A program made the position numbers and the translations under genes. From positions 868,001-932,000 of the forward strand of contig MU008170.1 in the NCBI GenBank assembly GCA_010909165.1: 64,000 nt of DNA, given 5' to 3'. Of this stretch, positions 47,598 through 51,733 are shown in pieces (within the stretch, counting starts at the first letter, position 1; every line of letters starts with the position of its first letter). This stretch comes from Anthoceros angustus. Taxonomy: Eukaryota; Plantae; Anthocerotophyta. The notes under the pieces were generated by a model. That model saw nothing but the letters and a program-made list of their open reading frames with translations. It had not been told where the DNA came from and searched no databases.

Positions 47598-48949
47598 ATG
47601 TCGGGTGAGTGAGTGTACATTGTTTGCTCGTGTTTGCGGTGGCTCGGTAGGGATAGAATGCAGGAAACGAGTGAGACGCGTTTCAGGGAGCGGTGGGAGG
47701 AACGCACGTTTCTAGTGAGCTGAGATTGCTGATCGTGGCGGTTCGAGCTCAGCAGGAGAGCTAGGGCTGCGGGATTGTTGTGGTTGAGTGGTAGATCGTG
47801 GAATGGCAGGGAATTGGAAGGGGAGCTGATTGGATGTGTGGCAGGCCGTCCGCCGAAACCCTGGGAGCGAGCTGGAGGAACTAATGCAGCTGCTGCTGCT
47901 CCTGCTGATTCTGGAGCTGCCTCGACCAGCGAGGTGAAGCCCGGAGAGAGCCCGAGTGCGGCGGGGACAGGAGTTGGTAGCCCGAATGTTGCGGGTAGGC
48001 CCATGCCACCGAGGCCCTGGGAACGACCGAATGTCGGTGAGTGATAGCTGTCTGCTGCACTTGGACAGGAGATGGATGGTGCTTGCGGCAGTGCTGATGC
48101 TTTTTCTTGCGTCTGATTCAGGGGGATATGGAGGTTATAGTAATACAGTTGGAGGTTATGGTAGCACAGTGGGAGGGTATGGTAGCGCTGGGTACGGAAG
48201 CACAGGGTATGGAGGTATAACACCTTACAATCGTCAAACGTATGGGAGTTATGGAGGGGGTTACGGTTCTGGATATGGAGGTTATGGTGCCGGAGGAATG
48301 TATGGCAATAATATGTACAACCGGTATGGAGTCTATGGGGGTATGTCTGGTATTGGTTATGGCGGGGGAATGATGGGAGGTCCCTACGGTGGCGGCCTTT
48401 TGGACCCGAACAATCCGAATGGACCTGGTGGTCCGCCTCCGAGGGCACCCGGTTTCTGGCAGACCATGTTGCGTGTGGTAAGTGCAGACTATACCTCTGT
48501 ACTCCGAGCCTTATGCTGCAAGAACGGGGAGTCTTCCAACTGGTAGAAGGGAAATCCTGATGAATGTTTCTGTTGTTGTTCACTCAGCTGCATGGAGTCG
48601 TCAGTGTCTTTGGACGAATTACAATGCTGGTTGATGAGAATACGCAAGCTTTCCACTTCTTCATCACCGCCCTTCTACAGGTACACCATTCGTTGCACGA
48701 GGTTTTAGGTTGGGCTTTTGTTGGCTTGAATTCTAACAATTGCTTGTGCTGCTTTCACAGTTAGCAGATCGAGCTGGACTGCTGTATGGTGAGTTGGCAC
48801 GGTTTGTCTTCAGGTTGCTGGGTATCCGAACAAGGAAACGGAAGGGCGACGTATCTGAGTTAAAAGGTCCAGAAGGAGTTTTGCCACTTGATGATAAGCC
48901 ACATCATGAAGGTGGCGGGTGGGACAATGTGTGGGGAGGTAGTAGTTAA
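47598..48949 (+). CDS. PEX13: Peroxisomal docking protein PEX13 (plant type)
   Basis: 7-nt first coding exon ATGTCGG (47598-47604) spliced to 47845 gives MSGRPPKPWE. YG-rich region, FW..MLRV|LHGVV..FGRI..LVDENTQAFHFF, LLYGELARFV and WDNVW. Confidence 0.93.
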
Positions 48950-49268
48950 AGTCCAGCGTCAAGAGCATTTTCTCGCTGGTTAGGACTAATTAGCACCCCC
49001 ACCATCGTCACTGCAACTGTACCATATCGAGATGTGATCCGTCATGCCTGGGTTTTGCTTCATAAGGTGCGTGTACAGTCCGAGTCTGTACACGCAGTGC
49101 TTGCAACATCGATGGATGACTCCTGAATCATAAACGACTGATACGCGGTTGATGCACGGAAGGATCATACTAATGTAATGAAAGATTTACCGAGTATCTA
49201 TGTACGTTGTGAGGGCCCGTACCACTAACGGGCATGTCCTAAGCTACCCCCTGTGCTTCATAACATCG

Positions 49269-51035
49269 TCACCCCATTCTGGGAGAGGCGTTTTGCAGAG
49301 CACTTAGCATCAGCATGGCTCCGAGAAAGTTTACTGCACCCAACTGCCATGCCCAAGGAGCTCTTAGGATAAACTGATTGGCGGTGGAAATAACGAAATT
49401 GCATTTCCGGTGTCAGGAAACGACAGACTCACCAGAAGAAGTGGGGGCGATATGGCACCTATCGAAACAAGCCAGCAGAAACTGAAGAACAAGAACTGCG
49501 AATGAAGCACAGAATGAGACGTCAATGAAATGCACGTCATGCCGCAGTGGCTTGGAAACCGAAACCGAAACGATGGCTTAGGGCTTACCATCCGCCCCAC
49601 TACTGTTGACAGGTAGAAAGCATCTGCACCATTCATGCCCTGTGCATCACCCAGAGCAGTGCCGATGTAGTAGACTCCAAAGACCTACAGCCACCCCATG
49701 GAATCGCGTCATTCCTCTGAAGACAGCTGTGCTTGTATTGTAAAACAGCACCTGCCAGTAAGCTTTGGTGTTGCTTACCACAGCAAGGACGGCTCCAACT
49801 TGAATCCAGCCAACAGAGACGCTGTGAAGGTCAAACAGAAGACCTGCAAGACTTCAATCTGGTTATGACACGTGATGAGCCAAGGATAAGGTAGCTGAAC
49901 AGTACACTACGATAGGCTACTCACCAAAGATTTTCTTGGGAAACAGGAGAGTTGCAAATCCAAGTATTGAGATGTAACATCCTGTGAACAAAGCTACTTG
50001 TGCTGGCCTTCGCATTTTCTCCACGGTCCTGCCCTTCTCCAATCTCTGAGTGCTCCTCATCCTTTCCATTCGTCTTGTTCCAACCATTAGCAGGTCTGGA
50101 ATGACTTCTTCGCTCACATTGAACTTGTCAAAGCGCTGTTCTGATGCTGGCCGAATGCTGCAGTCATGGAGAGGGGAGGCACATCAGACACCATTCATGC
50201 AACCAGAACTCCACCTCCAAAGCCCTCCCGACTTCCTAAAGAGAGACGCTACAGCAAGGCTTACAAGGAGGTAAGAGGACTGCTTCTTTTACCAAATCAC
50301 ACCATCCTTTGACAACGATGCCACTTCAGGGTGAGGAGCAACCTCTCCATCGGGACCAGCTGCCATTTTGTTAGAGATTCGAATCTCGTTAGGCGCCATG
50401 CTGAGAGCCACAATGACGGCATCACTATCACCCGACCGCCCGGCATGAGCATCTCCCAGAAGCCGACCCAGCACGATCACATCTCCATCTGCCACAACAT
50501 GACCTCCCCTATTTACATCACCCATGACCTGTTACAGAATAAAAACATGGCATTAAAGCCAACAACACAAACAATTGACCAACCAGTAGCGCCACCCTTT
50601 GTCTCAGAGCCATCAGTCGTGACTTACTACGATAGTGCCTGAATGCTCCACAAATTCTCCGAACCGAATTGTTCTTCTGATGTACAGGCAAGGAGCCCCT
50701 TGAGCTGCTTCTTTCGATTTCTGCTTCTCCTTGGGTGCAGTCACCTGGTGAAGCCAGGACCACGGGGGATCAGGTTTTCCATACACCTGGAACTCCGGTT
50801 TCCTGGTCCAGAAGCTCGCGCCTCCTCCTGCTTGCGCCCTCGGAGCATGTCTCTGTCCCGCAATCGTTCTTCTTCCGGACCAAGTCCACACCGTCTCTCC
50901 GCAACACGCATCACTCCAGCAAGCCCCACTCCTTAGACCTAGAGGCACCTGCGCACTTCTAATTCTACCCGCGCTAAACCCAAATGCGGCCTGATCCAGG
51001 CGAGACTCAACTGGCAGAAGGAGCTGAGAAGACAT
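49269..51035 (-). CDS. MinC C-terminal-domain protein with putative plastid transit peptide, fused to a multi-pass membrane domain
   Basis: Seven GT-AG exons, frame-consistent to TGA: 51035-50628, 50528-50293, 50158-49925, 49843-49779, 49684-49589, 49495-49433, 49343-49269. MinC_C-like region LYIRRTIRFGEFVEHSGTIVVMGDVNRGGHVVADGDVIVLGRLLGDAHAG...AVIVALSMAPNEIRI...PEVA. An alternative in-frame ATG lies at 51170. Confidence 0.85.
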
Positions 51036-51733
51036 AGCAGACCCACATCCCACTCTGCCTGTAAGATCCCGCCAGACAAGAAGTCCAGGCTCCGGTCCCG
51101 ATAAAAAATCTTCCCGCGCTTGCGTCTTGATGAGGGCGTTGCCCCACGCAATGTGCACAGTCCGGGCCATCACTGCTTCTTCAAACGTCTGCCTGGATGA
51201 TGTTGTTCTGCAGGTCTGGTTGTTTGTCCACACTCCAATCTGGCTACAAAAATCTCGAGCCTGTGCATCAGAAGAGCGACGATGTCTCTGTACCAGATGA
51301 TCGAGAGGACTGACAGAAAGCCAAAGGTTGCTGACATCCCCAACGAATTTTTTCTTCACCGATGATCGACTTACCCAGCATTTTCAGCCAGCGATGCAAT
51401 GGCGTTGAGGGATCGGCTGGCATTCGACTTTGCGTTCCTTTTTCGGTTTCATGGCACATGTACACCACAAAGCCCAAAACCCTGCAAGGCGTATGTCCTG
51501 AGCAGACAAGAGTCTGGTGATAATTTAAACACTCCCTCCAAGATGGTATGCTATGGAGTCCGGCCACCGGCGTTTCTTTCGAACAACAGTCATAGAGTCC
51601 TCAACTGCGTGTACCAGCAGCAGCAACTGTGGCTCATCACGAACTGAACAAGGGAGAGCGATGGAGGAAGAGCAATGTCGTTAATCTGACAACAGGGGGA
51701 TGGGCGAGTGCTTGTGTACAGCTCTCATTGACG

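Follow-up and report, generated by a model that had tools for sequence, protein, structure and literature searches.

Gene structure and domains at the locus

A gene of the hornwort Anthoceros angustus was analysed that lies on the minus strand at positions 49269-51035 of a window of 64,000 nucleotides (GenBank assembly GCA_010909165.1, contig MU008170.1, positions 868,001 to 932,000); all coordinates below are those of the window. On the best reading of its sequence, the gene encodes the hornwort member of a green-lineage protein family in which an organelle leader, the C-terminal domain of the bacterial division protein MinC (MinC_C) and a four-helix membrane domain of bacterial type are joined in one polypeptide. 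A preliminary description of the window had proposed seven exons at this position, and this model was confirmed. All six introns have GT..AG borders, and the coding sequence of 1176 nucleotides, translated by script, comprises 391 codons followed by TGA. The peptides quoted in that description are all present, and three of its four hydrophobic strings cross exon junctions as quoted.

A contig of 2776 nucleotides from run X1, which is 100% identical to the window, has all six coding introns removed at the predicted borders. The splice at 50157|50293, where the MinC exons meet the membrane exons, is present in this contig, placing both sets of exons in one transcript as had been supposed. The same splice was found in contigs of all four runs compared, as were the joints 49343|49433 and 49495|49589. 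All six joints recur in a contig from a related organism (B), which is 90-95% alike. In a contig from organism C, also 90-95% alike, the intron-1 joint aligned 1-3 letters off with one extra letter, and a partial contig from organism D has four of the six joints. A second contig of organism D (run X20 record 8, about 49837-50834), less than 90% alike, also bridges exon 2 to exon 3; it may represent a paralogue or another species in the sample.

In organism B, 16 of 710 positions differ in the listed coding exons (about 2%) and 48 of 493 in the 3' piece 48757-49249 (about 10%). The lower divergence of the coding exons indicates that both halves of the gene are under constraint. The leader and the untranslated region (UTR) vary among the related organisms, whereas the domains do not. 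The leader is called variable because organism C carries an in-frame insertion of 15 nucleotides after 50911. Organisms B and C are without 13 nucleotides at 51176 in the 5' region.

Homology searches of this gene were carried out with single exons, and the structure models are those of a liverwort orthologue (P0009). The coding part of exon 1 (51035-50628), read from sequence and translation, begins with a leader of 98 residues (50742-51035) and continues with the N-terminal part of MinC_C (residues 99-136; 50628-50741), the core of which is encoded by exon 2 (50528-50293). The presence of a MinC C-domain, as first described, was established by the match of Pfam MinC_C (PF03775) to exon 2 with an E value of 3.5e-20 and 72.3 bits, compared with a curated cut-off of 33.2. 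The NCBIfam MinC profile NF001778 aligned its positions 135-173 with residues 99-136 of exon 1 and its positions 174-251 with exon 2, and is thus continuous across intron 1. Furthermore, chain C of PDB entry 4V02, the Aquifex MinC C-domain in the MinCD complex, matched exon 2 at 3e-12. The tail of exon 1 gave no match in the PDB search.

The N-terminal domain of bacterial MinC was not evident in the preliminary description, and the searches agree with this. Residues 1-98 of exon 1 had neither a Pfam match nor an NCBIfam MinC match, and eight orthologues gave only MinC_C in Pfam. Residues 1-126 of the liverwort orthologue are disordered in its AlphaFold model. The leader is transit-peptide-like in composition, as had been noted, with 10 Ser, 9 Arg, 11 Ala, 11 Gly, 6 acidic residues and a net charge of +5.

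In bacterial MinC, the RSGQ motif contacts helix 7 of MinD (PMC6803595). At this position the present gene reads RFGE. The five other land plants compared (liverworts, a moss and a lycophyte) have xxGE or xxAE here, and prasinophytes and Mesostigma read R[AG]GQ. The Q is thus replaced by E in six of the six land-plant members compared, and the R is retained only in this gene. MinD binding, which had been part of the first interpretation, is not evident from a motif in this state.

The multi-pass membrane domain was also confirmed. Exons 3 to 7 encode a domain of roughly 125 residues with four helices, as judged from the translation and the AlphaFold model of the orthologue. The count of four to five hydrophobic segments given at first resolves in this model into four membrane helices and one short interfacial helix. 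In exon 3 (50157-49925), the first part (50004-50157) encodes a charged linker, about 52 residues long, that connects MinC_C to the membrane domain. The remaining part (49925-50003) encodes membrane helix 1 (about 50003-49938) and the beginning of loop 1, and contains the invariant T-G-x-Y-I, G and P. Exon 4 (49843-49779), the borders of which are seen as contig joints, encodes loop 1, in which the short interfacial helix lies, and the N-terminal half of helix 2, including an invariant G-W and V. The end of helix 2, a G-D loop and the N-terminal half of helix 3, with an invariant F-Y and a membrane-embedded R, are encoded by exon 5 (49684-49589), in which 27 of 31 residues are identical to those of the liverwort orthologue. 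Exon 6 (49495-49433), also bordered by contig joints, completes helix 3 and begins helix 4. The coding part of exon 7 (49343-49269) supplies helix 4, in which N, A and L are invariant, followed by a short tail and the stop codon TGA at 49271-49269. The helices were assigned from the translation, the alignment of homologues and, for exons 3 to 5, the orthologue model.

When the membrane domain of the orthologue was modeled alone (P0009, residues 262-396), four long helices were obtained with a predicted local distance difference test score (pLDDT) of 92.6 and a predicted TM-score (pTM) of 0.85. The long helices exceed a pLDDT of 90 in the orthologue models. In the full-length model the beta-helix of MinC_C is confident; the leader and linker are disordered, the linker having a low pLDDT. 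The alignment of homologous membrane domains has 26 invariant columns and a mean column identity of 62%. By reading, 26 of these 26 columns are preserved in exons 3-7, including T-G-x-Y-I, P, G-W, F-Y, R and N. The membrane domain is 63-71% identical to four of five bryophyte copies and 49% identical to that of Marchantia paleacea; the identity of MinC_C to the bryophyte copies is 43-51%. By these comparisons the membrane domain is the better conserved half of the protein. Helix 3 contains an invariant arginine, and an Asn or Asp is preserved in helix 4. The charge bias around the helices is weak, except for a basic stretch before helix 1.

The possibility was considered that the membrane domain belongs to a known family or fold. 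Pfam gave only sub-threshold noise (DUF2065, Yip1, SPW), and a Foldseek search against the PDB returned nothing at E 0.001 or better. The best VIA-align score, a Z of 10.4 to soluble prenyl synthases, is below the level of that tool for helical bundles. TM-scores in the ESM Atlas were 0.55 or less, and a second Atlas search gave feature scores of at most 0.90 and TM-scores of at most 0.59, all to unnamed or unrelated clusters. The best-named Atlas match to the orthologue domain was the membrane part of the archaeal protein CdpA, with a TM-score of 0.55 over 116 residues and a root-mean-square deviation of 4.5. CdpA is a cell-division protein; between four-helix bundles, a match in shape as weak as this one carries no weight.

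Upstream of the coding sequence, exon 1 with its UTR part spans 50628-51260 (contig piece 50626-51259) and holds the remainder of the 5' UTR, the ATG at 51035, the leader and the first MinC_C strands. It is preceded by a 5' UTR intron of 114 nucleotides at 51261-51374, GT..AG on the minus strand, which was seen in X1 only (joint 51259|51374, cut +1). A 5' UTR exon at 51375-51481 (contig piece 51374-51481) reaches at least 51481. An upstream open reading frame of 7 codons, with its ATG at 51381-51379, spans the 5' UTR intron. A second in-frame ATG is present at 51170 (51170-51168), with no stop before 51035, and could lengthen the leader by 45 residues. Intron 2, between the MinC exons and the membrane exons, measures 135 nucleotides, and its retention leads to an immediate stop at TAA 50292-50290. 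The 3' UTR is provisionally placed at 48950-49268 (X1 contig piece 48757-49343). Beyond it lies a convergent gene on the plus strand (47956-48949) with a Gly/Tyr-rich open reading frame, the last exon of which begins at 48757 and has its stop at 48949; this gene had no Pfam match. The X1 contig extends into it, and its loose end before 48757 matches the plus-strand open reading frame 48564-48764. The 3' ends of the two genes therefore abut or overlap, and the run-on into the neighbor does not count against the splice junctions.

Distribution of the fusion and of the membrane domain

An exhaustive search with exon 2 gave 2199 matches, none above about 58% identity, and the best 150 were examined. 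In ten of these, MinC_C is followed by an extension of 130-170 residues, and a profile built from the extension recovered exactly those ten. Seven are from named green-lineage organisms, two are in 90% clusters with prasinophyte proteins, and one is a metagenome fragment that falls among the green group in a quick tree. The membrane domain was not found on any bacterial MinC among the best 150 MinC_C matches, so the fusion looks like an invention of the green lineage.

The combination of leader, MinC_C, linker and four-helix domain was found in 13 named green-lineage organisms. It was recorded in the liverworts Calypogeia, Riccia (two species), Marchantia paleacea and M. polymorpha, the moss Ceratodon, the lycophyte Diphasiastrum, the streptophyte algae Mesotaenium, Closterium, Chara and Mesostigma, and the prasinophytes Cymbomonas, Pyramimonas and Pycnococcus. 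The M. polymorpha copy is already named MinC in NCBI. In these relatives Pfam detects MinC_C alone, with no family for the extension. When homologues were aligned to the locus by tblastn, they fell onto exons 1 to 7 in order. The nearest named relatives of the gene are bryophytes, none of them close. The fusion is thus not peculiar to hornworts; it extends from prasinophytes to a lycophyte and is the standard form of green-lineage MinC.

In the quick tree, calculated from 106 columns, the green sequences group together (support 91), and exon 2 of the window groups with the streptophytes (86). The green group was not placed as sister to the cyanobacterial MinC cluster, and the tree did not resolve the sister group of MinC_C. 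A Gloeomargarita MinC cluster is among the best bacterial matches.

The membrane domain was also searched alone by profile, and two kinds of protein were recovered. The first consists of proteins of volvocine algae with a leader and the four-helix domain (P0176, P0178 and one from Pleodorina starrii). In Pleodorina starrii (L001, 10001-11290), the domain is encoded by a gene of its own that has no MinC part next to it, and the upstream gene is on the opposite strand. The second was a bacterial match of 121 residues (P0181), which led to a family of 87 bacterial proteins or clusters of about 120 residues. Sources of this family include metagenome-assembled genomes labelled Aminicenantes, Thermoanaerobaculia and Bacteroidia.

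A relation of the membrane domain to uncharacterised bacterial families, raised in the preliminary description, was borne out by hhalign. The alignment of the orthologues matched the bacterial alignment at 99.4% with an E value of 1.1e-21 over 120 columns. This homology was established with the domains of the orthologues, and the exons of the window were compared with their relatives exon by exon. Y, P, W, V, F and the membrane-embedded R are invariant across the plant and bacterial groups. The bacterial family is thus homologous to the membrane domain over its whole length. However, its members are free-standing, with no MinC part, no Pfam family and no conserved neighbors. The four bacterial neighborhoods inspected (L003, L005, L007 and L008) had no shared gene and no division genes.

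Possible role in plastid division

In bacteria, MinC_C is the MinD-binding domain of MinC; it dimerises and binds FtsZ filaments. The C-domain of E. coli MinC blocks division only with MinD present and prevents the lateral association of FtsZ filaments (PMC6803595). The domain described here is homologous to the C-terminal beta-helix domain of the bacterial proteins (E. coli, Thermotoga 1HF2, Aquifex 4V02). However, bacterial MinC is soluble and recruited by MinD, whereas the hornwort protein has four predicted membrane helices. It also differs in having no detected N-terminal FtsZ-inhibitory domain and RFGE in place of RSGQ, and its gene is nuclear, split by introns and provided with an organelle-type leader.

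Judged from the sequence, there is about an even chance that the protein is a MinC_C anchored in a plastid membrane that antagonises FtsZ assembly, without a need for MinD in its recruitment to the membrane. The leader would direct import into the plastid, and the four helices would insert into one of the plastid membranes, the inner envelope being the likeliest. As the number of helices is even, both ends of the protein would lie on the MinC_C side, presumably in the stroma. MinC_C, a dimer in the bacterial relatives, would be tethered to the membrane by the linker of about 50 residues. In this position it could act as bacterial MinC-C does after recruitment by MinD, binding FtsZ filaments, hindering their lateral association and restraining assembly of the Z-ring. 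The built-in anchor would take the place of MinD-dependent recruitment, which would explain both why the N-domain has been lost and why the MinD-contact motif has degenerated in land plants. Since it is more conserved than MinC_C and also occurs free-standing, the membrane domain probably does more than anchor the protein, and it may bind a partner or act as a sensor.

The proposed role, that of a negative regulator of plastid Z-ring assembly on the stromal side, resembles the role of ARC3 (PMC13650779). However, ARC3 is soluble and has no sequence relation to this protein, and no exon gave a Pfam match to an ARC3-type FtsZ-like domain or to MORN repeats. According to a 2026 review, plants lost MinC and use ARC3 instead, while MinD and MinE are retained (PMC13650779). 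ARC3 is in turn reported lost in hornworts, together with FtsZ2, and in P. patens (PMC10030945), where a MinC-type protein is present, as seen in the window and, for P. patens, from the literature. The MinC-like gene of P. patens has been noted as a possible stand-in for ARC3 (PMC10030945), and Chlamydomonas is recorded as having MinC (PMC4641359). MinC is nowhere mentioned in the study that connects monoplastidy in hornworts with the loss of ARC3 and FtsZ2 (PMC8964177).

With MinC-like genes of Chlamydomonas and Physcomitrella already published (PMC4641359, PMC10030945), the component cannot be called undescribed as a whole; that term may hold for the membrane domain and for hornwort MinC, which were not found in the literature searched. 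The green-lineage MinC and MinC-like proteins of Chlamydomonas (XP_001692722), Physcomitrella and Marchantia polymorpha were taken to be the same family, the first two by published description only. The MinC proteins of liverworts, a moss, a lycophyte, streptophyte algae and prasinophytes share the leader, MinC_C and the four-helix domain. In the papers available these genes are listed as present or absent only, and the full-text literature searched, in which few subscription journals were covered, contained nothing on the membrane domain, on hornwort MinC or on experiments with plant or algal MinC. Of the first interpretation, a single gene with a leader, MinC_C, a membrane domain and no detected N-domain thus stood; MinD binding and complete novelty were not supported.

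Several points weigh against a membrane-anchored FtsZ antagonist. In volvocine algae and bacteria the membrane domain exists independently, and none of the four bacterial neighborhoods connects it with division genes. Because the charge bias is weak, the topology is deduced chiefly from the helices being even in number, and the start codon, 51035 or 51170, is uncertain. A permanent anchor leaves it unclear how inhibition would be kept off the division site. X1 and the other runs are only guessed to be RNA; the argument is that their introns are removed, which DNA would retain. Moreover, liverworts and the lycophyte reportedly retain ARC3, and the protein is therefore not simply an ARC3 substitute.

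A different role for the same architecture was considered, in which the membrane-fixed MinC_C mainly binds MinD and recruits or positions it at the envelope rather than acting on FtsZ. In Arabidopsis, the unrelated membrane protein MCD1 recruits or positions MinD at the envelope. Such an adaptor seems rather unlikely for the hornwort protein, although bacterial MinC binds MinD through MinC_C (PMC6803595), the canonical R[AG]GQ is retained in prasinophytes and Mesostigma, and plants have kept MinD and MinE (PMC13650779). All land-plant members compared show a decayed motif, yet their MinC_C is conserved and is constrained between related species.

It is also unlikely, and a little more so, that the membrane domain is the working part with a function unrelated to division and that MinC_C is only a stromal dimerising or scaffolding module. 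The higher conservation of the membrane domain and its occurrence alone in volvocine algae and bacteria would fit such a protein. The invariant arginine of helix 3 and the Asn or Asp of helix 4 are what would be expected of a functional site, and the bacterial neighbors are not division genes. However, the fusion to MinC_C has persisted all the way from prasinophytes to a lycophyte, MinC_C scores well above the Pfam cut-off, and no fold or family match points to a transporter or an enzyme.

A location outside plastids, for example in mitochondria or by dual targeting, is improbable. A mitochondrial Min system is known in some protists, the leader was judged by its composition alone, and in the quick tree the green sequences did not come out as the sister of the cyanobacterial MinC cluster. 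However, the family is confined to the green lineage in the sample examined, the Gloeomargarita MinC cluster is among the best bacterial matches, and in published work the MinC genes of green algae and moss are regarded as belonging to plastid division (PMC4641359, PMC10030945).

Finally, two adjacent genes or an artefactual model, with MinC ending just inside intron 2 and the membrane exons separate, had to be taken seriously at the start because the unspliced frame stops at TAA 50292-50290, which lies just past the end of the MinC profile, and the contigs are compatible with a minor intron-retaining isoform; this was rejected as highly improbable, since the splice 50157|50293 is present in all four runs with the reading frame preserved and the same fusion is conserved in the gene models of 13 named organisms.

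Significance for hornworts and the green-lineage family

The hornwort contains an intact, spliced MinC-type gene that is conserved between related species, in contrast to the published loss of MinC in plants. In green-lineage MinC in general, the N-terminal inhibitory domain appears to have been swapped for a conserved four-helix membrane domain. From its domains, the protein is a candidate for an overlooked part of chloroplast division, above all in plants without ARC3.

A broader proposal, offered as a speculation with only a small chance of being correct, is that green-lineage MinC is a permanently membrane-integrated FtsZ antagonist placed by its four-helix domain and not by MinD, and that it would be the main negative regulator of the Z-ring where ARC3 is absent, as in hornworts and Physcomitrella. 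The gene opens the question of how placement of the Z-ring is controlled in such plants and whether a fixed anchor can replace MinD-driven recruitment. It likewise raises the question of the role of the uncharacterised bacterial membrane family. If the proposal is true, an FtsZ antagonist of this kind would be a missing piece in the account of hornwort monoplastidy.

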